Assembly: GCA_002269645.1 (NCBI GenBank)
Contig: NIVC01001549.1
Coordinates: 205,411-269,410, forward strand
DNA from: Macrostomum lignano
Lineage: Eukaryota
Direction: 5' to 3'
Length of the DNA stretch: 64,000 nt
This document shows, in pieces, positions 158 through 52,916 of this stretch. Position 1 is the stretch's first letter. Each line of letters begins with the position of its first letter. The translations under genes and the position numbers were made by a program. Under the pieces are notes generated by a model. That model saw only the letters and a list, made by a program, of their open reading frames with translations. It did not search any database and was not told the origin of the DNA.

Positions 158-1834
158 TTAGCGATGGTTCTTCGACCAGCGTACATGCGGAGCATCGTCG
201 CTTTCCTCTGACAGATCTCTCTGGTGACTGTGGCTCTCTTTTTGTCTTCCATGTCGTGCTCTACGAGTGGCAGCAATGCAATCAGCGCATTCAAACGTCT
301 GTGCGTGCAACGACAAGGTCACATAGGGACATTGGAAAAGCATTTCCTGACGGCTCTGCGTTGGCTGCAGTCTGTTGCCTTCGCGGCACCAATGGCGTGG
401 GCGAGAGGCTGCCGTCCTCCGATCTGAAATAGACGTTACCTGATCCCTCTTTTGCGACTTTTGAAATGCCGGTCTGTCTGAGTTATTCTGTAGACGATGC
501 AGAATACTCGGTTGGACCAAACGAATCTCATCGTCTTCCTCACGGCACGTCTCATCGTCAGGCTCATCTTGATAAAATTTACCAATTTCATAGGGCATTT
601 TGCTCCTGTCTTGCCTTTCGTATCGCCTAATTCTTTCGGGCCACCCTAAGTCACTCGATGCATTATTTCCAGAATAAATTTTGTCCATTCGACGCTCTGG
701 ATGACGCAAGGTTTGCTCCAACTGCGGCTGTTCTTTTGCAGGAAATTCCAGAGTTCTCTTAGGTTTCTGTTTTGGTAGCTCTTGCCTCTGAGGCTGATGA
801 CTTTGTGGCTGCAGGACCGCAGACTGTTGAGGCTTCTGGCCTGACTGTCGAGTATTTACTGGTTTTCGTCGATCGTCAACGTAGATTTCGTTTTGGTTGG
901 ATACATTTTGCTCGTAGTCCCAGTTGGTGAAGTCGTTCCGTCGTTCATCCCTGTTGCTACGGCGAGACTGAGACTGCCGTTGCTGCTGCTGAGATTGTGG
1001 CAAATAATGCAGAGATGGTGAAAGCGGCATTGACGTCCGAGGAGACATTTCAGATTGCAGTGGCAAATTGTAGTCAGCGTTGCATTTTGGCTCTTTTTGC
1101 GGTCTCTGCAGCTGACGATGCTGCTTCCGGTTGGATGTGTTCTTGTTTTGTCTAGCGATTCTAGCAAACTTTTTGGCGTAATACTTTGGATCAAAATTAG
1201 TTTGGTCATCGCTCATTTCCACTGAAGAATTATCCGACGCGGTGAGAGGAGAGAGAGCCACCTGGTAGGCAACTTTTGAGCTCTGCTGCTTTCCTCCGCT
1301 TCTTTCACATGGGTCTTTTGACATTAACTGCCGCATGTGAGGGCTGCACAGCTGCATGAAGCGGCCTTTCATCGATCCTCTTTGCTGGGGCTGAGCTGGC
1401 TTGCTTTGCTTATTTTGTAACAGCAAAGAATTTGAAGGCAGTCTGCCTGTCCTGCCGCTTAACAGGCTGCGATACTGCTCTTGGAAGAAATCTTCGGAAC
1501 CGCTAGAAACATTGCTGGCGTTGTCCTTGCCGATTGGACTACGCGGATTTCTGGGTCCGATGCTGCCCAGATTTATAAGTTCACCGCTTTCTTGACTGCT
1601 AAAGTCGCGGTCTCTACTGGCGCTTCTTTCAGAATAGGACAACGCCTCCTGTATTTCGTTTAGTCTACTCGGGTTCTGATCGTAATTGTTGCTAAAAGAC
1701 TGCCCAGAAAGACGCGGGCGTCGCGTCTGGCACAATCGGCTGTCCAATTGGCTGCAGCCCTGCTGGCTGCCGTTTTGGCGTCGTCTTCTTCGGCCTCCAG
1801 CGGCGCGACACGAAGGTAGCACTTTTGTTGGCAT
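158..1834 (-). CDS. Hypothetical 558-aa low-complexity, probably disordered Q/S/R/P-rich protein
   Basis: Uninterrupted 558-codon ATG-started ORF in non-repetitive sequence. No recognisable domain; one Cys/His cluster (CPYVTLSLHAQTFECADC) near the C-terminus. Introns at the 3' end cannot be excluded. Confidence 0.6.
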   Translation of the reverse strand: MPTKVLPSCRAAGGRRRRRQNGSQQGCSQLDSRLCQTRRPRLSGQSFSNNYDQNPSRLNEIQEALSYSERSASRDRDFSSQESGELINLGSIGPRNPRSPIGKDNASNVSSGSEDFFQEQYRSLLSGRTGRLPSNSLLLQNKQSKPAQPQQRGSMKGRFMQLCSPHMRQLMSKDPCERSGGKQQSSKVAYQVALSPLTASDNSSVEMSDDQTNFDPKYYAKKFARIARQNKNTSNRKQHRQLQRPQKEPKCNADYNLPLQSEMSPRTSMPLSPSLHYLPQSQQQQRQSQSRRSNRDERRNDFTNWDYEQNVSNQNEIYVDDRRKPVNTRQSGQKPQQSAVLQPQSHQPQRQELPKQKPKRTLEFPAKEQPQLEQTLRHPERRMDKIYSGNNASSDLGWPERIRRYERQDRSKMPYEIGKFYQDEPDDETCREEDDEIRLVQPSILHRLQNNSDRPAFQKSQKRDQVTSISDRRTAASRPRHWCREGNRLQPTQSRQEMLFQCPYVTLSLHAQTFECADCIAATRRARHGRQKESHSHQRDLSEESDDAPHVRWSKNHR

Positions 1835-2348: not shown

Positions 2349-2354
2349 TTTATT
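2349..2354 (-). terminator. Candidate polyadenylation signal (AATAAA) of the ANK-cGLR gene
   Basis: AATAAA on the minus strand about 125 nt downstream of the stop at 2479; the region is AT-rich, so it may be chance. Confidence 0.35.
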
Positions 2355-2478
2355 AAAGTGTTTGAACTAAAGAGCGGTAATTTAAATTTTCTGCTGGCAA
2401 TACCTATCATAGTCGCTTTATGTCTGCCAATGGATTTCATCAATTATTAAAGATGGAGCATGGCAAAAAACAACTATT

Positions 2479-4001
2479 TCAGCCGCTGTTGAGACAGTTC
2501 CTGAAATTTTGCAAAATTTTTTTTAAAAGAAAGTACGTTTTTAAACGTAAACCAATGATAAAAACATGCCTACTCACATCCAGTCTCTTTTTTATTTCCT
2601 CCTGCACGATGTTTGGAACCCAGTGACGAACTGGCTTCCGAAGTAGGCGCAACAGTAGCTCCTGATCAGGGCAATACCGGGCACTGATTGCAATTTCCTG
2701 CAGGTCTGCGCCATTGCGATCAGCAACTGCTTGAATCCACAGGTAAGTGCGCTCGTCGCTAGGGACAAACTCGAGGCGCAAACCATGCAGCAAGGCGTCA
2801 AAGTTAACAAAATAATACGTATTCATGTTTGACAGCTGCAATGGAAAGCATTCGGAGAAAAATCTGGGCAGAAAGTCAAGCAAAGGCTGCCGGCTGAACT
2901 TGAAGCAAAACTTCCAAGCCGAATCACTGTTCGACAGGTGGTTCCGGACGAGATCTTCTGTGGCGTTATTTGCTGTCATTCTTGCGGACCAATCGATTCC
3001 AAGGCTCACAGGAAACTGCCCAAAGTCAGTCAGAATTTTCACTGCAGCCTCTCGTTGTCCCAACTTGAGACAGTTGAGCGCTCTGAGAGTCTCCCTAGCG
3101 GAGCGAGCGCAGTCTGGCAGTCGATCAGTTAACTCAGCAACTGTCTGCTGCGAATAAGCCTCGCTTTTCGCTGCGCTCAGTAAGTACAAGCAACGCCTTA
3201 CCACACCGTAGATCTCGTGGTATTTTAGCTCTTTAGACTGGGACATCGACCCAGGAAGATGTGGCAGAATTTGAAACGGGTGAAAGTAAAACACACCAGT
3301 CTCACCAAGTGGCTTCAAACTGTTCTTGTATTCTTCTAGATATTGCGGCAGGTTCCTGATCACCGTTTGCACGGCCTCCATTACAGTCTGCAAGGCTTGA
3401 ATAACATCTTGCGGACTTTGTAAACTTAATCCTTTCAAATACAAGCTAGCATCGCACAGAAAGAAATGATTCATTATTCTCCCGTTTAAATTATTTTCCG
3501 TACAGTTTTCTTTGATACTGTCGTATAGAACTTCCAAGGAGCGCTTAATAAGGTTTATTAGATTCTTCGGATATTTCCAAGCTTCCACAGGGGTTTCTTC
3601 GACCAATCGAAATGTCAAGGTTTTAGCGTGATAAGACTTCAAGCCTTGAATGTTTAATTTATCTTTGTTACCAATAACCTTCTTGACGAGATACTTGAGC
3701 GAGACAAAGACCTGTCCCTGCAAAGTAGTCAGACTTCTCAGCAGTCGCTTCTCCAGAAAAGTTGTGCTCACCCTGAGCTGCTGGCCAGCCATGCCGGCTG
3801 GGGCTGCGTGGACGATATGACACGGAGAGTCAACCAACTCGTCCTGGAGTGACTTCAGCACGGACTCGAGGATATTCGAGCGCCGCAATCGTTCCGGTAA
3901 AAAAATCGCGATTGGAGGATAGCAGCAGAGGCGACAGGCGTCAACATTGTCCACGGCGGGCTTGAGCTCAGACCCGTTGATCGGTTTGGCTGGATTCGAC
4001 G
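2479..4001 (-). CDS. Exon 3: Mab-21/cGAS-like core and C-lobe plus about 250-aa helical extension
   Basis: LRVSTTFLEKRLLRSLTTLQGQVFVSLKYLVK..GLKSYHAKTLTFRLVEETPVEAW..IMNHFF matches the Mab-21/cGAS pattern (RxSFSxxEKxL..LK..SYHxKT..W..HFF). The third acidic residue lies in VDNVDA. Confidence 0.85.
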
Positions 4002-7000
4002 CTGTGGAGAAATAAATGGCAAATTCAAATGAAAATAACTTTCGGATACATATAGAATTTGTGAAGCATCCGTTTAAATAAATATTCATGTGCTTGTTTT
4101 ACTAGTCGAACATTTTCTGCATTATAAAACATTTAACAAAAGTACATCTACGCCATTCAACTCATAATTTACTTTTTGCCTTAATTGAACACGGCAAAAG
4201 ATCGCCCACTGATAACTAATTTCAAAGGTGTGTGTGTACGGGTATTGGCTCCGCGATTTAGATCAGCAAACGAGAAGTGAACGCTCGGAAAACGATGCTG
4301 GTCGATCGTAACTTCGAACCTCGATCTACAACATGGAGTCTTGCACCTTTGAACTAGAAGTAACGCTCCTGTTTTTTTCTGTCCCAGTTTTAATGGCAAC
4401 TGTCCTTTGTGAACTTTTGATTGGTAAAAACTTATTAGCTGAGTTTATATCCTCCTGCTCTTTTGTCTGTAAAGAGTTTACCTAGTTTAGTAAAACATAG
4501 CAATTAGCCCTATCAAGTAACCAGGGTACACACAAGGCCACAACCCTTTTGGGAATGTTTTTAAGGTTTTCTTTAGTAGGCCAGGTGCTCCCATAGACTT
4601 CGAAATGGCATAAAGTGAAATTAACTCTTACCAAATCCGGAAACGACAATATGACCATCTGCGTACTCCACTTTATCCGACTCGGGTATTTCCGGGCAGC
4701 GACACGCACCTTTCAAGTGATACAGTCTGCCCGGAATCAGCTGCATCATATCGATGTCTGATTCGCTATCTGTACTGCCGTCAAGTACGGACAAATTGTT
4801 CCCCCAGCCTTCCGAGTAACTACCAACAATGTAATATCCATCGTACGAGTTCATATCGCGAACAATCTGCTGTAGTACATCCGCAACAGCCGTTTGAAGT
4901 GCAACCCTGGAGTCTACAAAGCCTGACAGACGGAGGGCTGAGTGCAGTTCCTCGCTCTGCTGTGAGACGTCTTGCTGGCTGCAAAATTATTATTGTATTG
5001 AAGTTTTCTGTACGTATAATCGAAGTCGCTGTTCGATATAGCGACTTTTGTTTACAGATTCATCCGTGTTTTTATTCATTTGCTAATACCAGCTTCGTCG
5101 CTATTCAAACCGTACGTCAAAACCTGTTTTCCTAATATGATAAATTAATCAGTATTTCCCCTGGTTTCGTTGCTTTCTAAATATCATTCATATTGATTCT
5201 CCCAAAATCTCTAGCTGCACACCTACAGGTAATAGAAGAACTAAATATACCTTTTTTCCAGACGCTCTACCTTTACAGTAGATAAACTACAGAGGTAAAA
5301 ACTATGACTATTATACATGTAGAATCAACCAATTTTCTGTGGACAGACAGAGGCATTCAGAAATAAAAAAAACATAGATGCTTACCCATCTGATTTTTCC
5401 ACAGAATTCGTACTATCTTTAGCTTGGTCCGAAGAATCAGATTTCGACAAGATCTCTTCCACATTCGCTAGCGCCTTTTTTAGCAATGCGATTACTTTAT
5501 AGTGCCGATTTTGCGAAGCAATGAAAACCGGTGTCGCTTTGTAGCTTGTCTGAATCGTTGGGTCTGCCTGTGCTTTAAGAAGCGCATCAACCACACTCCC
5601 GTGACCTTTCTGCGAGGCAATAAAGAGCGGCGTTTCTCCTGTAATTAGCTGTTAATTCACGCTTGCTTGAGCTGTTAAAAGCAGTTGCACAACGTTGCGA
5701 TGGCCGAATTGTGACGCGACGTAGAGCGGCGATGCGCCTGTTTCAGAGCAGGCGTCGATGTCTGCACCTGCTTTTAGTAGCAAGCGCACAATTTGGTAGT
5801 GTCCATTTTGTGATGCAATATAGGCCGGTGTCTCTCCGATTTTTGATTGAAGATTAACGTCGGCTCGAGCTTGGATAAGAGACTCGACAACTCTTAGGTG
5901 ACCGTTTTGTGCAGCGATATACAACGGCGTTGCACCGGACTTCGCCTGGAGACTAACATTTGCACCGGATCTAATAAGCAGGTCTACAACAATGCAATGA
6001 CCTTCTTGCGATGCCGTGTAGATGGGTGACAGGCCGCTTCTTGATTGCAAGTTGACTTCGGCTTCGTTCTCGATTAGGCCTTTAACTATTTTATAATGAG
6101 CGTGTTGTGCTGCCACAAGCAACGGTGTCTGACCGAGCTGGTCTTGGGCATTAACCTGAGCTGCGGCTCTAATAAGAGAGCGGACTACCCTTAGATGTCC
6201 ATTTTGCGACGCAATAAATATTGGCGTTGCGCCTGAATTTGTTTGAATGTGAATATCCGCGTTTGCTGCGATTAGCAGATCAACCACAAGGTTGTAACCT
6301 TTCTCGGCTGCGATGTATATTGCTGAAGCTCCATTGTTTCTCTGCAAATTAAGATCAGCCTGCCGCTCGATGAGCAGCCGAACGACCTCCGGGTGGTTTA
6401 ACTGAGAAGCTATAAACAGTGGTGTCACCCCGTGACTTTCCTGAACGTCGCAGGTGGCTTGCGCTTTCAGTAGTACCTTCACCACTTCACCGTGGCCCAT
6501 GAGAGATGCAATAAACAGTGGTGATTCACCGGAACTTCTTTGAAGGTTTATATCGGCTTGAGCATTGATGAGCAATTCGACTGTGTTAGCATGACCCTTC
6601 TGTGAAGCGATGTAAATTGGTGTTGCGCCCAAATTTTCTTGCATGTTTACATCAGCTTGAGCTTTGATTAGCTCATCTACAACTCTGATGTAGCCATTCT
6701 GGGAAGCCGTGTACAGTGGCGATGATCCAAATGAGATTTTCTTCGCGTCAACATTAGCGCGTGCCAAAATCAGACGCCTGACAATATCGTGATGGCCACT
6801 TTGGGATGCAATCCAAATTGGAGTGATGCCATTGGTAGTTGCTAAATTCACATCCGCATTGGCTTTAATCAGAGCCTGCACAATAAAACAGCGGCCCTGC
6901 TCTGATGCAATATAAACTGGTGTTGATCCGGAAACGGTTCGAATATTTACATCAGCTTGATAGTCGATCAGCAAATTTACAACGGCAAGGTGACCCTCCT

Positions 7001-7337
7001 TGGACGCTAAGTAGAGAGGAGAAATGCCAAAGCTGTTTTGCAGATTGACGCTGGCACCGAAGTCAATCAGGACTCGAGCCGCATCAGTGCGTCCCTCTCG
7101 ACTGGCTAAATGTAGAGTGGAGGTGCACATTCTGTCTCCAGTGGGCAGCACCAGTCGGTCAATGTCGGTCCTAGATTTCAATGCCGTTTCCAAGTCGCGT
7201 AAATTTCCATGCTTGATAGCCTGCAGTAAAAATTCTTCAACAGCAGAATCTTTCCAGTCTTGTTTAGTAGAATCGCCAATAGCTTGCATCAAAGCTGATA
7301 GTGCTAGCTTTAAAAGTACACCAACAGCTAGCTGCAT
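2479..7337 (-). CDS. Ankyrin-repeat / Mab-21 (cGAS-like receptor, cGLR) nucleotidyltransferase fusion gene; exons 7337-5386, 4978-4632, 4001-2479; about 1273 codons with one in-frame TAA at 5652-5654
   Basis: Donor GATGG|GTAAGC (5385) joins acceptor ttttgcag|C (4978) in phase 2 (GG+C=Gly). Donor TTTG|GTAAGA (4631) joins ttctccacag|CG (4001) in phase 1 (G+CG=Ala). Exon lengths 1952+347+1523=3822 nt, divisible by 3. Motifs GSYSEG..SDID, VDNVDA, EKRLL, LKSYHAKT and HFF are present. Confidence 0.8.
4632..4978 (-). CDS. Exon 2: nucleotidyltransferase catalytic loop of the cGLR
   Basis: Encodes QQDVSQQSEELHSALRLSGFVDSRVALQTAVADVLQQIVRDMNSYDGYYIVGSYSEGWG..DSESDIDMM, i.e. the GS..EG + DxD motif. Canonical AG and GT boundaries; an in-frame stop lies just upstream of the acceptor. 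Confidence 0.85.
5386..7337 (-). CDS. Exon 1: ankyrin repeat array (about 17 repeats plus N-cap), interrupted by in-frame TAA at 5652-5654
   Basis: 33-aa repeats TPL(Y/F)IASQxGHxxVVxxLIxAxADVNLQ. Fifteen repeats precede the TAA and two more (ETPLFIASQKGH, ATPVFIASQNRH) follow in the same frame as ORF 5382-5594. Confidence 0.9.
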
Positions 7338-9888: not shown

Positions 9889-12800
9889 TTAAGTTTCTCC
9901 AGCTCCACTTGACTGCGTCAAAGCGAACATTGGAGCCTGCGCAATGAGCAGCTCAACGGCGTCCTCGCGCCCCAGTTCCCGCAGCACGTCAACCAGAGCT
10001 CCGACATTGGTGCCGCCCGGCCCGCCGACTCGTCGCCACTCGTCCAGCAGGACAGCCGTGCGGCTGCGCAGCCACTCGTTGCCGCTGTGCACCGCGGGCA
10101 CGGAGTGGGTCAGGCCGAGCCGCACTGCCAGCAGGCACCAGTCCTTGCCGAGCGGATCCGGCGGGTCAAACATGCGGCAGAGGCGCTGCAGAGTCGGGGC
10201 TCTAAGCGACGACAGTGGAAGCTGGGGGCCCAGGGTTAGATGCGACAGTAGCTCTCGGCTGCCAAAGCAGATCAGATTTTCCAGGTCCTCTTCTTCTTCC
10301 TCCTCGTCTTGTGTCTCATCGCACGTTGAACCGCTGGCGGGAAACGCGATCGGGATAGTTGGCGGCGGAAAGCTGATCAAGCTGCCCGACTCACTGGACT
10401 CCCCTGTTGTGCTTTGGTGCTTCTGCATTGCTCGAAACACGGCACTCTGCGGCACGGCCAGTTTAAGTCTCCTTGGAAACTGACGCAGCTCTTTCGGGCT
10501 GAGCAAAGCCAGATCGAACTCTAGGCCGGGGCACATGTCGTCAATTGTCTGCTCCAACAGGCCGGCGATGTCTTGGCAGATACCAAACAGAAGCTGGGCC
10601 CGGGCCGGCGGACCCCTGGCTCTAAGTCGGATCAGCTGATCCGATTCTTCGAGTTGCAGCATGCACTCGACGCAGCCTTCCAGAGACAGTTTTGAGCCGT
10701 GGAACCATTGGAAGAGATCGATGCGCAGCGGCTCCAAAGGCGGTGGTCTGCAGGCGGCTGCTTGAATACTCCGACGCAGACGGCACTGAACTCGAGGGAA
10801 AATATGCACTAGCTGGGAGGCGGCCATCGATGCCTTCAGTTGCCAGCCGCCATACACTGAGTTCTCGTGCTGAGCTGTCGGCTCCCATGGACTTCGGCCG
10901 CTCTCCAAGAAGTTCAAACAGGGAAACTCGTACTGAACATCTTCGTCACTGTCAGAATCTTCGGCGCCACCATCGAGGTCAGCTCGAGTGCAGAGATCCA
11001 GTGCAGACAGCAGTCGAACCAGCTGATCAGCAGCAGTTTCACCCGTCATGAACTGAACGTCATTCACTGAGAATGTACCTGTGACGCGAGCCTGCGCAAT
11101 GTTGTCATACGACAAAAGATAGCCTAGTACATCGGAACAGAGCCACTGCGGACTGAGCACAATCATGTCCTGCTCTACTTCTGATTCTAGGTAGACGACA
11201 TCGCCGGTGTATTGCAGCTCCTGGATGAGATCTTTCAGATGATCATCTGAGCATAATGGGTTGACTTTGCCCCTTACGGCTTCAATAAACTGCTGCCAGG
11301 TGAAAACTGGGAATTCTGTGGCTCCAGCCCATTCTGGTAGTCGGCTCGCCACAGTGTCGAGAAGACCATTGCCTCGAGGCAGGTGCCGCAAAATTTCCGT
11401 TCGCCAATCAGCCAGTCTCTGTCGAAGCGACTTCATTTCAGCAGACATTGCCTCGCTGGTGTCAACCGCGAAGACCTCGTGGCAAACTTCGAGCCTGTAC
11501 TGAGCCAATTCCTGCACCTCGAGAAGCAATCGGTCAGCGTCTGCACTCTCAAGGAGACCACGCGGTCCGTCGCCACGAAAGACAGTCGCCGCATCTGCGT
11601 GCGTTCCAATTAGCAGCACTCGGGCGAGGGTCTTTGGCTTGCCGCAGTATCCTAGAGGTTCCCTTGGTGGCAATCGGGCCAGCAAAAAGTGCAGCCAGAA
11701 CAGGACCCTCTGACGCATCGTCTCGTAGCATTCCGCTAAGCTGAACAGAATGGCGTGTACGCACGAAGTGTCGCCAATAAAATGATCGTAAAACAGATAG
11801 TAGGGCTCGTAACCAGAGAATTCCCACACGCTGAAGTCCCCAGCGCCAGTGATGTTCAAGTTTTGAACAGCTATGCCGCGTGTGTAGGCCTCGTGTTGGG
11901 CGTCAAAGCTAATTTCTGATGGTGCAGAGGACCGCTGCAACAGCGAGAAGCACTGCCGTCGGTCCAACTCGTCGTCACAGTCGCCAACAATTACTTGACC
12001 AGTGGAGGCGCCGCTTCCCCCACCGCCGCCGCTGCCGCCGGCAAGAAACGTCCGACGCAAAAAGCCGGTGATTCGGTTCGAGCGCAAACTGTCAATTAGA
12101 GCAGTCTTTCCGCTGCCGCTGTGACCGAACACCTTCAGCTTGATTCTGGGCAGGCTGCGCTGAGTAGGCACCAGCTGCTCAACGCAGACCGCTCGTCGCT
12201 CAGGTCGCATCCGGCCCAGTAAACTGGCCGTCATTGTGTGACCCTGCGCGAGTGACATAACCTCGGGTAGAAGGCCCTCTTGACTCGCCAGCTGCGGATT
12301 AGCGCCGGCGAGAAGAAGACAGCGAACAACTTCAAGATGACCAGCTCTGGCCGTTTGATGCAGTGGCGTGAGTCCTTGGACGTTGACAGCGTCAACTCGA
12401 CAACCGTAGGCACACAGCGCTTGGACAACTGGCAGCTGCCCTAAACGACTCGCTGCATGCAATGGAGAGTCGCGTTCCGACGAGTCGAGCTGATCAAGCG
12501 GTGCTCCAGCGCTTATTAGTAGCATAGCCATAGCCTGGTGCTGTCGTTGAATAGCATGTCGCAGCGGACCCCAGCCCTCGCTGTCCGGAATATCCGGTCG
12601 AGCCCCGGCACGAAGGAGGACGCGCGCGACTTCGATGCCCAAGGATTCGCTGACGATCTCGGAGGCCGCTATCACTAGCGGCGTGCGCTGGTGCCGCCTG
12701 TCGCGCGAATTCGGACTGGCGCGTCGACTGCCGAGTAGAAGTAGGCGCAGAATAGTCAGGTGACCCCCGCGACAGGCCAGGTGTAGCGGCGTCTCACCAG

Positions 12801-13227
12801 CTCGATTCTGGCCCTCCGGGCACACCGATCTATCCAGGAAAAAAGCCGCCACCTCGTCGTTGCCGACGTGGCTAGCCAGGTGAAGACCATTTTCGCAATC
12901 GGTGTTCAACTGGTGCAGGTCGGCGCCTCGCTGCTCCAACACCATCAGAGCCTCGACGGAACCGCTATCCGCCGCAACGTGCACGACCGTTCGACCACTG
13001 CTGTCGCGACAGTTCAGGTCGACAGTAGGCGGCAGCGTCAGCAATGCGTCGCGAACTTGGCTGGGATCGCCGCTTGCGGCAGCTTCAAACAGGCCGGCCA
13101 GCGGGAAGGACGCATCACCGCCTGCCGCTTCGCCTTCGCCGATATTCAAAGAAGCGTCGTTGGCATCGTTCGCCAAGGAGTTGACGCCGTCCGCAATGCT
13201 TGAGCCGTCAATTTCTAGTAGACTCAT
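9889..13227 (-). CDS. DAPK1: Death-associated protein kinase 1-like ROCO protein (ankyrin repeats, ROC GTPase, COR, death domain); no kinase domain in this ORF
   Basis: 1112-aa intronless ORF with about 8 ANK repeats, P-loop RIKLKVFGHSGSGKT, YTRGI, DAPK-type WEFSGYEPYY, COR region (VLSPQWLCSDVLG) and death domain DPPDPLGKDWCLLAVRLGL, as in DAPK1. Confidence 0.88.
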   Translation of the reverse strand: MSLLEIDGSSIADGVNSLANDANDASLNIGEGEAAGGDASFPLAGLFEAAASGDPSQVRDALLTLPPTVDLNCRDSSGRTVVHVAADSGSVEALMVLEQRGADLHQLNTDCENGLHLASHVGNDEVAAFFLDRSVCPEGQNRAGETPLHLACRGGHLTILRLLLLGSRRASPNSRDRRHQRTPLVIAASEIVSESLGIEVARVLLRAGARPDIPDSEGWGPLRHAIQRQHQAMAMLLISAGAPLDQLDSSERDSPLHAASRLGQLPVVQALCAYGCRVDAVNVQGLTPLHQTARAGHLEVVRCLLLAGANPQLASQEGLLPEVMSLAQGHTMTASLLGRMRPERRAVCVEQLVPTQRSLPRIKLKVFGHSGSGKTALIDSLRSNRITGFLRRTFLAGGSGGGGGSGASTGQVIVGDCDDELDRRQCFSLLQRSSAPSEISFDAQHEAYTRGIAVQNLNITGAGDFSVWEFSGYEPYYLFYDHFIGDTSCVHAILFSLAECYETMRQRVLFWLHFLLARLPPREPLGYCGKPKTLARVLLIGTHADAATVFRGDGPRGLLESADADRLLLEVQELAQYRLEVCHEVFAVDTSEAMSAEMKSLRQRLADWRTEILRHLPRGNGLLDTVASRLPEWAGATEFPVFTWQQFIEAVRGKVNPLCSDDHLKDLIQELQYTGDVVYLESEVEQDMIVLSPQWLCSDVLGYLLSYDNIAQARVTGTFSVNDVQFMTGETAADQLVRLLSALDLCTRADLDGGAEDSDSDEDVQYEFPCLNFLESGRSPWEPTAQHENSVYGGWQLKASMAASQLVHIFPRVQCRLRRSIQAAACRPPPLEPLRIDLFQWFHGSKLSLEGCVECMLQLEESDQLIRLRARGPPARAQLLFGICQDIAGLLEQTIDDMCPGLEFDLALLSPKELRQFPRRLKLAVPQSAVFRAMQKHQSTTGESSESGSLISFPPPTIPIAFPASGSTCDETQDEEEEEEDLENLICFGSRELLSHLTLGPQLPLSSLRAPTLQRLCRMFDPPDPLGKDWCLLAVRLGLTHSVPAVHSGNEWLRSRTAVLLDEWRRVGGPGGTNVGALVDVLRELGREDAVELLIAQAPMFALTQSSGAGET

Positions 13228-13366
13228 TACTTAGCTCTTAATTTGCATAATTTGAGCAGGCAGCGGTTGTAGTAGTGCGAGTTGCGGTAAGTGTCAGTTG
13301 ATTAGAATTTCTATAGCTGCTCAATTTGATCAGGCCTCGGACCGAAAGCTGATTTGTTCGATCTTA

Positions 13367-20186: not shown

Positions 20187-40009
<19,823 letters not shown>

Positions 40010-42683: not shown

Positions 42684-44700
42684 ATGGATCGCACCCCAGT
42701 GTGCTGCACTGCCTACACAAGTCCTAACGACCTATGGCTGCAAATCCGTTGGGATGGCGGTCAGCAGCTCAAGTCATTGATGGTAGCCGCTACGAAATGG
42801 GCCGCTGCTGATCAGACTGCAAATGTCCCATTGAGCACTTTGAGCTCAAACAAAGACTGGGTTCTGGTTCGTCCGAACAATTGGAATCTGTGGTTTCGCG
42901 CCAGACTACTGGGTCCAGTGGCTAGCGACAAGAGCTGCTGTCAGGTGCAGCTGGTGGACTTTGGAAACCGGCTATACTTGCCGCAGAGCCCCGACCGCCT
43001 GCTGCCGATGCCCGAATTCTTCGGAGAACAGAAGCTGCCGAGCTGCGCGGTGCCGTGCCGACTGGCGAGAATTTCACAGCGCAGCGACTGGTCCAAGCGA
43101 GACGCTAAACGGCTCGAGGAGCTGCTCACCATGACTACAGAGGATCGGATTCTAGATGCCGAATTCGATTGGGAAAAGTCAAGTGCGAACGCGCCGACGC
43201 CTGTGGAGCTCTACCAGCGCGGTAGCGAGTTGTCAATCAACGACGCGTTTGGTAATAGAACCGGCAGTCTGATTGCCAAGCTGAGAAGCGGCCAGGCAGT
43301 GAATTTCTTGCCAGCTAATCCGACCACGCTGAGGTCAATGCCACTAGTGCAGCAGAATCAACCAATAAATGATTTCGACAACTCGTGGGACCAGCCTTTC
43401 AATGGCATGGTCAGCCATGTGACGGACAAGGGCATCGTGTTCGTACAGAAGGACGAAAAACTACTGTCTGGTCTTCAGAGTCAGCTCGAGCTGCTGAGCG
43501 ACAGCGAAGATCTAGTTCGATTTTCGGCGAGCTCGTTGCCAGATAAGGATGAGATTTTCGCTGTTTTCCAGGTAAGTAGTGCATGGCTACATGCATAAGC
43601 TATAGCGGTATTAGCCTATCAACTTGTATGCTTTTCACCAAAGCCACCGATTTTACCTACTTATTTTTATACTTTTCAATGTCCATGGCATCAACGAAAA
43701 AATGAAAACACTTAATCTTGCAACACTGCCCCACGCTTCGCAGGAGCCGCCACTCCGTCACTACAGAGGACGAGTTTTAGAACTCCTTGGGGGTCAGCGA
43801 GTCAAGCTGCTTATCATTGACTTCGGCTTCGAGCTGATAGTCGATTGGAATCAGTGCGCCAAACTACCAGGTAGAATTCGTTACAAACCGCAGTGCTGCC
43901 CGTTTCTACCTGTGCGTCAGGGTCAGGTTAAATCCGGAGACCCAGGCATGGATCGCCTAAGTTCGCTTTGGAAGGAAGTCAACAAGAACACTTCTCCAGT
44001 CAGGGTGACGGTTACTCCTACTGAAGTTCCGGACATGGACCCAGTCGAGGTGCAAACTGCAAGAATTGACGTCCATCTGAACAACGGCGGTAGAGAGGAC
44101 ATCGTGGACTTTCTGCTTAGCACTGGAGCTTCGAAATGCGCTGACACGAAAACTGTTGATCTGAGCACATGCAAGTATCGAAACTGCAGAGAGGAGCTCA
44201 ACTGGGACGTGGACAATATCGTCTGTGGCACGTGCACCCACGTAGAAACCGAGAATTCAGTCGAGCAGTTCGTATTCTTCCAACCGAACACTATGCAAGC
44301 AGTCGCCGAACAACTAAAGCTAAAACTGACAATTTCCACCGACAAGCTGGAAAAATATGACGCAACCAGCTTCAAACAATTGCCAACGCCAGTTCTTGTA
44401 CAGAAAGACGAAGACGGTGCCAATTTTCAACGCGCCACGGTGGACAATGTTGACAAGACAACGTGCGACGTAACCTACGTAGATATGGGCAAACGGCAGC
44501 AAGGTGTTCCAATTGGCAGACTCTATAAACTGCCTAGCGATCTGCTAACACTACCAACAATCTGTGTCAAGTGCCAATTGATAAATAAAGCTACCGGCTC
44601 CGAAACCGATGAAGTCAAAATTGGCGACGTGAAAATCTTTACTATTGTTGGCGTGGCCGATGGCGCCTACAAGATTGCCATCGTGGGGACTGGACATTGA
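42684..44700 (+). CDS. Multi-Tudor domain protein (three extended Tudor domains, TDRD-like); exons 42684-43571 and 43744-44700, about 614 aa
   Basis: Phase-0 intron CAG|GTAAGT..cttcgcag|GAG rejoins a split Tudor (EIFAVFQ|EPPLRHYRGRV..IIDFG). The other Tudors are WFRARL..QLVDFGN and FQRATV..TYVDMGK, each followed by an LPxxxxxCxL-type motif. Confidence 0.85.
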
Positions 44701-46685: not shown

Positions 46686-47807
46686 TCAGATAAACTTGGA
46701 TCTCATCAATTTAATTGGCAGTCGAAGTTTCAATTGTCGCATCACCCGAACAAACTGATAAGGAAACGGCGCTTTAATAACTGACACTGATGCAGAATCG
46801 CTAGGGGATTTGCTCGGATCCACTGGCACAGCAACGCGTTGGCAGTGCAAGAACAATGGCAAATCTCTAGCCCTAGCTGGCCGAATACCCAGTCTAGTTA
46901 GTGTGCTCTCCGGCAATCGTTGGGGCATCAGCCGATCTCGCATGCTCGAATACTTGTGATCACCGAGCACTGGCGTGTTCAAACCATAGCCCAGATGCAC
47001 CCGGATCTGATGCTTGCAACCTGTTAATGGTTGGACTTCAACCAGAGCGCATCGTTCGAATTTGTCAACAACTCGATACCGGGTGATAGCTTCTTTAGCT
47101 CCCGACCTGCTCGAAGCTGTCGGCACTCGAGCTCTAGTCAGCACCGTCAAGTTGGCTTCATCAAGAGCCGACTGAGTCGGGCGTAAGGCCGCTCGCCAAT
47201 CACAGTCTCTATGCTTAGCCGAAGCTGTCAATGGGATGTCAACGATGCCCTCCAACGGACTGGGCACATCGCGAGTTATACAATAATAGTACTTTTCTAT
47301 ACGGCGTTCTTTAAAGCAGAGCTTTAAATGTCGAGCCTGCTGCTCGGTGCGAGCTAACAGTACAATGCCAGTTGAAGTTCGATCGATTCGATGCACCGGG
47401 TGCAGGTGAGGACAAGACAGTCGAGCCGCAAGGCCTGGCAGGTGATCGATTAAGTTAATTGATCCGCGAGCAACTGTGCCACCCTGACAGCACACATTGT
47501 AGGGCTTGTTAATTGCTACAATGCCGTATTTATCCCAGACAATGTTCTTATAAAGAAATTCGACAATTTCATCAGGCTTTAGGCTGGCGAATGACCAGGT
47601 ACGCTTGTTGGGTAGAACAGACCCGTCTTCTTTGTCTATGGGATTGTTAATAGGCATTTTATCGCCTTGTTTCACTTGAGCAGACGACTCAGATTTAGCC
47701 ATTTTTTCACTGTTATTAATCATCTCAGTACGAATTTTCAAAGCATAGTCAAATGCAGTGGCACTAGATGCATAGCATCGGGTGAAGGCTGGCAGTAGTG
47801 GCATCAT
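46686..47807 (-). CDS. RPUSD4: RluA-family RNA pseudouridine synthase, mitochondrial RPUSD4-like
   Basis: AINKPY, HRIDRTSTG (catalytic Asp), KYYYCIT, TGCKHQIRVHLGYGLNTPVLGDHKYS and LFLH motifs; N-terminus resembles a mitochondrial presequence; intronless. Confidence 0.85.
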   Translation of the reverse strand: MMPLLPAFTRCYASSATAFDYALKIRTEMINNSEKMAKSESSAQVKQGDKMPINNPIDKEDGSVLPNKRTWSFASLKPDEIVEFLYKNIVWDKYGIVAINKPYNVCCQGGTVARGSINLIDHLPGLAARLSCPHLHPVHRIDRTSTGIVLLARTEQQARHLKLCFKERRIEKYYYCITRDVPSPLEGIVDIPLTASAKHRDCDWRAALRPTQSALDEANLTVLTRARVPTASSRSGAKEAITRYRVVDKFERCALVEVQPLTGCKHQIRVHLGYGLNTPVLGDHKYSSMRDRLMPQRLPESTLTRLGIRPARARDLPLFLHCQRVAVPVDPSKSPSDSASVSVIKAPFPYQFVRVMRQLKLRLPIKLMRSKFI

Positions 47808-51924: not shown

Positions 51925-52916
51925 ATTGATCAATATATATATATATAGACGCAAAAAGTTAGATAGCTTTTGCGCGCACGCGCTCGCAGAACAGTCGGGA
52001 GGGGCAGGCCATGGCGGACTGGGGATCAAGTCCGATAGCCTGCAAGTCAGCCAACAGAGTGGTAATTAGCGTCACAGTTCTTCCTTGGCCGCGGCGCAGC
52101 CGCTCGGTCGGTTGGTGCAGGAGGACCAGCGCAAGCGGGTTTCGCTCGCCGCGACCGTGGCTCCTCAGACAGTGGCCCAGCAGCATCTGGCGGCGCCGGC
52201 GCAGGGTGACGCTCAGGGCTGGGACGCCGGCGCGAACCATCAGGTCTCTGGACGGCAGCCTCTCCGGGTAGTGCACGCCCAGGGCGTGGCGCAGCAGGGA
52301 CCTGTATAGCGCGTCCAGGGCTTTCTCTCGCGTGGCGGTCATCGGCACTGCTTCCATGCCGTACAGAAGGATAGGCTCAACGGCAGCGCGGAAGAGGCGC
52401 ACCTTCAGGCTGTCTCTTGCAGCAGAGTTGAAGACGTTCCTGAGAAGGTGCGCCGCACGCCAGGCCTGATTCCTTCTGTCGGAGACGATGGAGTCGGGAC
52501 TCATCACCAGGGAGCCGAGGTACCGAAAGTCCTCGCACACCGCGATGGCGTCTCCGTTGGGCAGATCTAGTGCCGGGGCGGTATCAGTGCCCACGTGCAG
52601 CACTTCTGTCTTCAGTGCGTTGATCATCAGTCCAACCCGAGCGCCCTCCTCGCAGAGTCTTAAGAGAGCGCGTTGGGCAGCAGCTGGATCGCGACAGAGG
52701 AGTGCGATGTCGTCGGCATACGCAAGAGCCGGCAGCGGGACTGGCACAAGCTCTGGCGTCCTTCAGGGCGACACGCTGGCTCCTCTGCTTTTCATCATGG
52801 TCGTGGACTACGTGCTGCGCCGGTCTCTCCATGATGACGACGGCTATGTGCTAGTCCCACGTCGAAGCTCCCGACACCCTGCAGTCCCGCTGCCGGCTCT
52901 TGCGTATTGATCAATA
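51925..52916 (-). mobile_element. 5'-truncated, 5'-inverted non-LTR retrotransposon (RTE-like RT 3' half) with (TA)n tail and 11-bp TSD
   Basis: Minus ORF 52747-51959 carries LAYADDIALL and the RT C-terminus. Plus segment 52744-52907 encodes the preceding GVLQGDTLAPLLFIMVVDYVLR. TSD ATTGATCAATA at 51925-51935 and 52906-52916. Confidence 0.88.

Follow-up and report, generated by a model that had tools for sequence, protein, structure and literature searches.

Analysis of a 64,000-nucleotide stretch of the Macrostomum lignano contig NIVC01001549.1 (assembly GCA_002269645.1, forward-strand positions 205,411 to 269,410; the whole stretch is hereafter called the window and is numbered from its first letter) led us to conclude, with a probability of roughly 80%, that a minus-strand locus near its beginning is a stop-disrupted, near-identical copy of the gene BOX15_Mlig023862, the intact form of which encodes a cGAS-like receptor (cGLR) preceded by ankyrin repeats. 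In a genome that has undergone large duplications recently, the window copy most likely represents either a duplicate that was disabled not long ago or a null allele. The simplest reading is that a nonsense mutation struck one of the redundant copies very recently, and the window copy is presumably non-functional. The initial annotation of the window had presented the locus as an intact and hidden, possibly novel, receptor gene. This view could not be maintained: the window copy carries a nonsense codon at ankyrin repeat 15 that leaves a 561-residue product only, the intact twin is deposited as PAA94479.1, and ankyrin-cGLRs of M. lignano were listed by Li et al. in 2023. The locus is therefore largely ordinary and no discovery in itself: it duplicates, in interrupted form, a gene held in GenBank whose family was catalogued in 2023.

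Spliced reconstruction of the locus afforded a gene of four exons and 1249 codons on the minus strand, with the following features.

5386..7337, minus strand: exon 1 (codons 1-650 and a further 2 nt), opening with the ATG at 7337..7335, the start also used in PAA94479.1; contains an N-terminal cap (residues 1-68), 17 ankyrin repeats (residues 69-630, window 7133..5448) and the beginning of a Ser/Asp-rich linker
5652..5654, minus strand: premature stop TAA, codon 562, at the end of ankyrin repeat 15, identified from the translation and the alignment to the twin locus
4979..5385, minus strand: intron 1, GTAAG..TTGCAG, phase 2, 407 nt
4632..4978, minus strand: exon 2, end of the linker, predicted N-terminal helices of the nucleotidyltransferase, G703-S704 (4824..4819) and D725-x-D727 (4758..4750)
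4002..4631, minus strand: intron 2, GTAAGA..CCACAG, phase 1, 630 nt
2578..4001, minus strand: exon 3, D784 (3951..3949), remainder of the predicted nucleotidyltransferase core, a helical lobe resembling Mab-21_C that contains KSYHAKT (3639..3619), and the greater part of a C-terminal domain specific to the family (residues 1017-1249, window 3252 onwards)
2501..2577, minus strand: intron 3, GTGAGT..TTTCAG, phase 0, 77 nt
2474..2500, minus strand: exon 4, 27 nt, the last 8 codons and the stop TAG (2476..2474)
2349..2354, minus strand: candidate AATAAA polyadenylation-type hexamer read from the letters, about 120 nt past the stop

The four minus-strand open reading frame fragments from which the initial annotation had assembled its gene (5652-7337, 5382-5594, 4621-4854 and 2479-4089) are all present, and the two introns it had proposed, 4979-5385 in phase 2 and 4002-4631 in phase 1, have GT..AG ends and correct phases and reproduce PAA94479.1 from the twin locus. 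Exons 7337..5386, 4978..4632 and 4001.. are thereby joined in a single frame with intron phases 2 and 1. Its statement that the fragments form one continuous frame stood as far as the shared frame is concerned, while the TAA at 5654..5652 interrupts that frame. Its count of three exons was revised to four because a 77-nt intron (2577..2501), which had been overlooked, precedes eight further codons and a TAG, and coding ends past this intron at 2476..2474 instead of at 2479. Paralogues align without a break over the second junction (GHIVVSGF/ASNPAKP), the spliced tail RLDELSQQRLK resembles the tail RLQELR of paralogue P0005, which fits intron 3, and the N-terminus MQ..LMQA.G is common to paralogues P0017 and P0039. 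A tblastn search found no further copies of the gene within the window.

Further support for the splice model came from a duplicate locus (L002) on contig NIVC01000010.1, which has the same gene order, the same neighbouring gene resembling death-associated protein kinase (DAPK) and a called 1249-residue ankyrin-rich product. The window and this twin locus share 97-98% nucleotide identity; the exons differ by 1.2-1.4% substitutions and 0 indels, compared with 1.7-9.5% substitutions and 48 indel columns in the three introns, and all indels fall in introns and flanks. Intron 1 has 6 indel columns and its flanking exons 0; intron 2 combines 9.5% substitutions with 40 indel columns; intron 3 shows 5 substitutions and 2 indel columns, and the last exon 0. 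Applied to the twin locus, the four-exon model yielded PAA94479.1 (A0A267HAB2, BOX15_Mlig023862g1, annotated as "hypothetical protein") letter for letter, a result for which intron 3 was required. As the GenBank annotation of GCA_002269645.1 was built from RNA-seq data with StringTie/TACO and TransDecoder (PMC5730564), this exact match confirms the three splice junctions on the basis of transcripts, in the twin at any rate. The presence of such a twin is in line with the genome of the DV1 line of M. lignano, in which 180 Mb of non-repetitive blocks are duplicated at 95% identity or more (PMC5730564). PAA94479.1, although about 97% identical and contained in the collection searched, was missing from the results of a word-seeded protein search, and the twin was reached through the duplicate of the neighbouring gene. 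The top library match, P0041, proved to be another paralogue, a merged tandem model with 50% identity, and was rejected as a copy of this gene.

In the window, the in-frame TAA at 5654..5652 separates the open reading frames 5652-7337 and 5382-5594, which lie in the same frame. It is due to a C-to-T difference from the twin at window position 5654, by which codon 562 changes from CAA (Gln) to TAA. Because this stop falls at codon 562 of 1249, no uninterrupted frame exists in the window, the copy can yield at most a 561-residue ankyrin-only product, and it is this stop alone that makes the receptor gene look hidden. Correspondingly, the annotation of contig NIVC01001549.1 holds the 561-residue ankyrin product alone and leaves the enzyme exons without any call. 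Two older gene models, P0036 and P0038, both of which fuse the gene with its DAPK-like neighbour, also encode Gln at codon 562. At other diagnostic positions these models are mosaics of window and twin states, which implies at least three distinct copies or haplotypes with the stop in the window's only. Excision of the TAA by a small intron was considered and rejected, as the sole surrounding GT..AG pair spans 22 nt and shifts the frame.

What the stop disrupts is a protein with three recognizable parts. The first is an ankyrin array of 17 repeats in strict 33/34-residue register (residues 69-630; Pfam on the spliced protein: Ank_2, E 1e-129; Ank, E 9e-104), in agreement with the approximate number given earlier, followed by a short, acidic, Ser/Asp-rich linker. 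For the second part, an AlphaFold2 model was computed for residues 652-1242 with twelve family sequences as input (mean predicted local distance difference test score, pLDDT, 77.8; predicted template modelling score, pTM, 0.75). A Foldseek search of the PDB with this model returned among its top 50 exclusively cGAS (human, mouse and pig), the oyster protein Cv-cGLR1 and human MB21D2, all with probability 1.0 and E-values from 2e-6 to 5e-5. At the sequence level, the family profile matched cGAS chains in the PDB in the SYHxKT region (E 2.4e-4), and hhalign aligned it to bivalve cGLRs with 99% probability (E 7.6e-18) over the segment that starts at the third Asp and takes in the helical lobe, placing D784 on their D-x-A motif. 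The comparison with cGAS proposed in the initial annotation thus returned the Mab-21-type fold, and the ankyrin plus Mab-21/cGAS-like architecture it had described was borne out; the accompanying Pfam check gave, apart from the ankyrin models, only a sub-threshold match of the single sequence to Mab-21_C (PF20266, 17.7 bits against a cut-off of 24.1) and, with E-values allowed up to 0.1, no match to the Mab-21 nucleotidyltransferase model PF03281. For several paralogues a PF20266 match is on record as precomputed. In terms of sequence, the catalytic half is less well supported than the helical lobe: its profile, used alone, retrieved no cGAS or cGLR chain from the PDB, and support there consequently consists of fold, motif position and family conservation. 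Taken together, the modelling supports the assignment of a putative cGAS/Mab-21-fold nucleotidyltransferase within the region of residues 652-1249.

The third part, residues 1017-1249 (window 3252..2477, minus strand), was modelled separately as a mixed helical/beta domain with a pLDDT of 80.8. It gave no significant fold match in the PDB or BFVD; the best PDB match, the N-terminal domain of TRIF, had an E-value of 0.37 and, not being significant, was given no interpretation. The motifs LPDCARSARE, DSAWKFCF and NFDALL are invariant in this domain, which appears from sequence comparison to be lineage-specific and is absent from bivalve cGLRs.

Inspection of the spliced protein confirmed the catalytic and helical motifs noted before (GSYSEGWG, SDIDMM and KSYHAKT), together with PAVDNVDA. 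In the predicted structure, G703-S704 follow strand 1, strand 2 opens with D725-x-D727 and a later strand holds D784; this is the placement expected for active-site residues, with a strand-loop-strand arrangement in the exon 2 part. The third acidic residue had been located in VDNVDA, which is indeed present; the family-conserved acid is the first Asp of this motif, D784, i.e. the Asp of PAV-D, and not the second. These five residues are invariant in nine diverged members, four of which are M. lignano cGLRs cloned by Li et al., and over about 113 family domains they are retained at 93-99% (G703 112/114, S704 112/113, D725 107/113, D727 105/113 and D784 124/133). Judged by these residues, the active-site G-S, D-x-D and D set is intact in the predicted enzyme. 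Within the nucleotidyltransferase core we also observed an H-x4-C-x-C-x14-H pattern (H738, C743, C745, H760; window 4719..4651, minus strand), found in 100/108, 89/106, 78/107 and 84/97 family domains, respectively, with C792, C827 and H828 also frequent. This segment may form a metal-binding insert loosely like the zinc ribbon of cGAS, yet situated elsewhere in the sequence.

Several observations weigh against the conclusion that the window holds a disabled copy of an ankyrin-cGLR gene. As to the disruption, the stop rests on one base in one PacBio-based contig, and the window copy exhibits no other decay, with zero frameshifts and every splice site kept. Relative to the twin, codon differences comprise 19 synonymous and 28 non-synonymous changes (dN/dS 0.47), and derived amino-acid changes, polarised with P0036 and P0038, are about equal on both lineages. 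As to the receptor, Pfam gives no match to PF03281 and a Mab-21_C score below the cut-off, the active enzymes described by Li et al. (PMC9980059) include none of the five M. lignano constructs in their screen, and enzymatic activity is known for no member of the M. lignano ankyrin-cGLR family.

Owing to the lack of decay, a very recent event and a base error fit the data equally well in this respect. The alternative that survives best, which we still consider unlikely, is that the TAA arose in base calling or consensus building, or through the collapse of a heterozygous site, in which case the window gene would be intact and structured like PAA94479.1. A single disabling change in 3750 coding bases, with no frameshifts and all six splice sites intact, is what such an error would leave behind, and the twin locus, P0036 and P0038 all have CAA at codon 562. 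On the other hand, errors in long-read consensus sequences are mostly indels and not substitutions, the contig's own annotation terminates the product at the TAA, and since the two loci differ by about 1.3% in their exons anyway, a genuine C-to-T change would be unremarkable.

A different objection concerns the enzyme and not the stop. The computed isoelectric point (pI) is 6.0 for the nucleotidyltransferase core and 6.5 for the core with the C-terminal domain, whereas the nucleic-acid-sensing cGLRs (cGAS, Dm-cGLR1 and Cv-cGLR1) form a basic subclass with pI values above 8.5 and a positively charged ligand groove (Li et al. 2023, PMC9980059); the computed values lie below this range. The acidic core argues against canonical nucleic-acid sensing, and by its composition the enzyme lobe is unlikely to bind DNA or RNA in the manner of cGAS. 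It would also be compatible with a family that is not enzymatic at all, in which the Mab-21 fold serves as a scaffold or adaptor and the ankyrin and C-terminal domains recruit partners, as has been proposed for Mab21L1 and for shrimp Mab21 proteins acting apart from nucleic-acid sensing. Such a role would agree with the description of Mab21 proteins that signal via IKK-epsilon outside the canonical paradigm (abstract of PMC12928593), and with a screen of 140 enzymes whose active cGLRs include none from a flatworm. We nevertheless regard it as distinctly unlikely, as the retention of the catalytic positions at 93-99% in about 113 diverged domains is hard to explain for a non-catalytic family, whereas, according to Li et al. 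2023 (PMC9980059), no functional active site is predicted for the non-enzymatic Mab21L1/2/3 group; in addition, many cGLRs are inactive in vitro, presumably because the right ligand is missing (PMC9980059).

The weakest alternative holds that the interrupted copy is still used, either as a stand-alone 15-repeat ankyrin competitor or regulator of the twin or through low-level read-through to the full-length enzyme; its 561-residue open reading frame, which is listed among the gene products, does keep the start codon, the cap and 15 repeats intact, and the stop context TAA-CAG-CTA (5654..5646) fits the CAR-YYA pattern of leaky termination known from plant viruses and reporter studies, a pattern to which we gave little weight, but a stop ahead of three introns normally exposes an mRNA to nonsense-mediated decay, and the downstream codons, being shared with the twin, are older than the mutation and hence were not selected for read-through, which makes continued use very unlikely. 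We thus retain a recently stop-disrupted duplicate of an ankyrin-cGLR gene as the preferred interpretation.

The intact twin belongs to a large family. A search with region 652-1249 found 34 homologues, almost exclusively from M. lignano, which are 34-63% identical and in many cases carry ankyrin repeats. When 1.84 billion representative proteins were scanned in full with HMMER, 1022 of them matched at E <= 0.001 and 85 at E <= 1e-30. Seven of eight sampled matches at E <= 1e-28 were M. lignano proteins, the eighth (P0109) being known from MetaClust only; the three matches sampled at E about 1e-13 to 1e-17 derived from one bivalve (Mercenaria mercenaria) and two ENA assemblies and covered only the segment from the third Asp to the helical lobe. 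At least three ankyrin motifs were detected upstream of the enzyme in 41 of 113 family proteins, many of the others being fragments, and when sequences are clustered at 50% identity, no fewer than 85 clusters of the family can be detected, many of which have between 3 and 18 ankyrin repeats.

Parts of this family have been recorded before. In their survey, Li et al. reported that 87% of cGLRs are single-domain proteins, some others carrying TPR or ankyrin modules, that corals possess cGLRs to which ankyrin repeats and death domains are fused, and that nematodes and most platyhelminths have Mab21-like proteins only (PMC9980059). Their Table S2 includes six M. lignano cGLRs with Ank_2 domains (PAA67649, PAA58690, PAA68676, PAA86972, PAA45980 and PAA68216), and Table S3 lists five M. 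lignano enzymes that were cloned as nucleotidyltransferase-only constructs within the 140-enzyme screen; PAA94479 does not occur in the portion of the PMC9980059 supplement examined. The active cGLRs described in that work come from insects, anemones, molluscs, hydras and corals. Our literature search found no later paper on ankyrin-cGLRs, and it yielded nothing usable on STING or another downstream receptor in M. lignano, a question for which the genome itself was not searched.

With the stop-disrupted duplicate taken as the best account of the window, the most likely mechanism for the intact protein can be proposed. It would be a cGAS-like receptor that makes a nucleotide second messenger, in which the ankyrin solenoid, perhaps aided by the C-terminal domain, would either engage a partner other than nucleic acid or keep the enzyme inactive, and release or binding would switch on second-messenger synthesis. 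Ligand recognition or autoinhibition would then be a task of the ankyrin array, the C-terminal domain or both, and not of a basic groove. A protein-sensing or autoinhibitory role of the array had likewise been suggested in the initial annotation; the acidic core and the lack of a flatworm enzyme active with dsDNA or dsRNA fit this inference without showing it. On a wider scale, we tentatively raise the possibility, which we think more doubtful than probable, that M. lignano has built a large family of acidic cGLRs with ankyrin arrays and a C-terminal domain for sensing protein or other non-nucleic-acid ligands, with the stop-bearing copy as a snapshot of birth and death. If true, non-nucleic-acid sensing by ankyrin-cGLRs would represent a mode of cGLR activation not yet demonstrated, and the interrupted gene would capture one moment of the fast turnover typical of immune receptor families. 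No dsDNA or dsRNA activity has been reported for the ankyrin-cGLR family. The family nevertheless merits attention for its strong expansion, its conserved catalytic residues yet acidic core and its extra C-terminal domain, and among flatworms, for which a loss of cGLRs has been reported, the M. lignano ankyrin-cGLRs are the principal exception. As transgenesis is available in M. lignano and RNA interference is established, the intact paralogues are tractable for studying how accessory-domain cGLRs are switched on.

The surroundings of the locus were also inspected. Directly upstream lies the DAPK-like gene (9889..13227, minus strand; 10001..13339 at the twin locus), whose product of 1112 residues combines ankyrin repeats with a Death domain. 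It adjoins the ankyrin-cGLR gene at both loci, and the longer models in its 90%-identity cluster, which also contains a protein encoded on NIVC01000010.1, are named Ser/Thr protein kinase; M. lignano has polycistronic, trans-spliced precursors. Directly downstream of the ankyrin-cGLR gene, a 558-residue open reading frame rich in Gln, Ser and Arg (158..1834, minus strand) gave no Pfam match. The segment 14652..38562 is a satellite field, typical of the repeat-rich M. lignano genome, with more than 15 different mini- and microsatellite arrays (e.g. a 17-mer x54, a 20-mer x111 and a 16-mer x85) and runs of TCTA, ACTG and ATCT of about 600 bp each; these arrays account for most of the long multi-frame open reading frames and the strong strand skews found there. 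Further coding signals, located at 42684..44700 (plus strand), 46689..47807 (minus), 51962..52747 (minus) and 33168..33989 (plus), comprise two adjacent Tudor-domain open reading frames, one for an RNA pseudouridine synthase, a reverse-transcriptase fragment below the Pfam cut-off and an immunoglobulin-domain open reading frame whose start overlaps a 21-nt repeat array.

Comparison with known systems places the window gene within a graded series of relatives. Closest is PAA94479.1 on NIVC01000010.1, the same gene in a duplicated block, with four exons, 1249 codons and the DAPK-like neighbour; it differs in having CAA (Gln) for the window's TAA at codon 562, in being annotated at full length instead of for its first 561 residues only, and in 27 further amino-acid changes besides the stop. 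The M. lignano ankyrin-cGLRs of Li et al. 2023 (e.g. PAA86972.1, PAA45980.1 and PAA68676.1) belong to the same lineage-specific family and have Ank_2 domains upstream. Those cloned share the motifs GS(F/Y)(S/A)(E/D)GWG..SD(I/V)D, RVSTT, LQGQ and LK(S/T)YH(A/V)KT with the window gene, whereas they are only 32-39% identical to its nucleotidyltransferase core. Bivalve cGLRs (Crassostrea, Mizuhopecten; Cv-cGLR1 structure 8gjw), among which Cv-cGLR1 is a nucleic-acid sensor according to Li et al. 2023 (PMC9980059), display a similar active-site signature, GS-x-EG..SD-x-D-x-M, but are devoid of the ankyrin array and the flatworm C-terminal domain and match the profile at positions of about 110-330 only. 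The coral cGLRs with ankyrin and death domains (Li et al. 2023, Fig. 4C) likewise combine a cGLR core with an appended protein-interaction module, a likeness drawn from their description and not from sequence; they belong to another phylum and probably represent an independent fusion. Human MB21D2 (7lt1), which ranked 44th in the Foldseek search, is an orphan protein of cGLR fold without a known ligand, yet it is a single-domain protein with neither ankyrin repeats nor a C-terminal extension. Human and mouse cGAS, finally, share the bilobed Mab-21 nucleotidyltransferase fold (Foldseek probability 1.0, TM-score about 0.5 on the cGAS length), a SYH-x-KT helix that aligns in sequence and the same layout of the G-S and acidic triad. 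However, identity to cGAS is about 14%, with no detectable sequence match over the catalytic half, and the ankyrin-cGLR is distinguished by a long stretch inserted to separate G-S from D-x-D, by an acidic instead of a basic core, 17 ankyrin repeats in front and a domain of about 230 residues behind.

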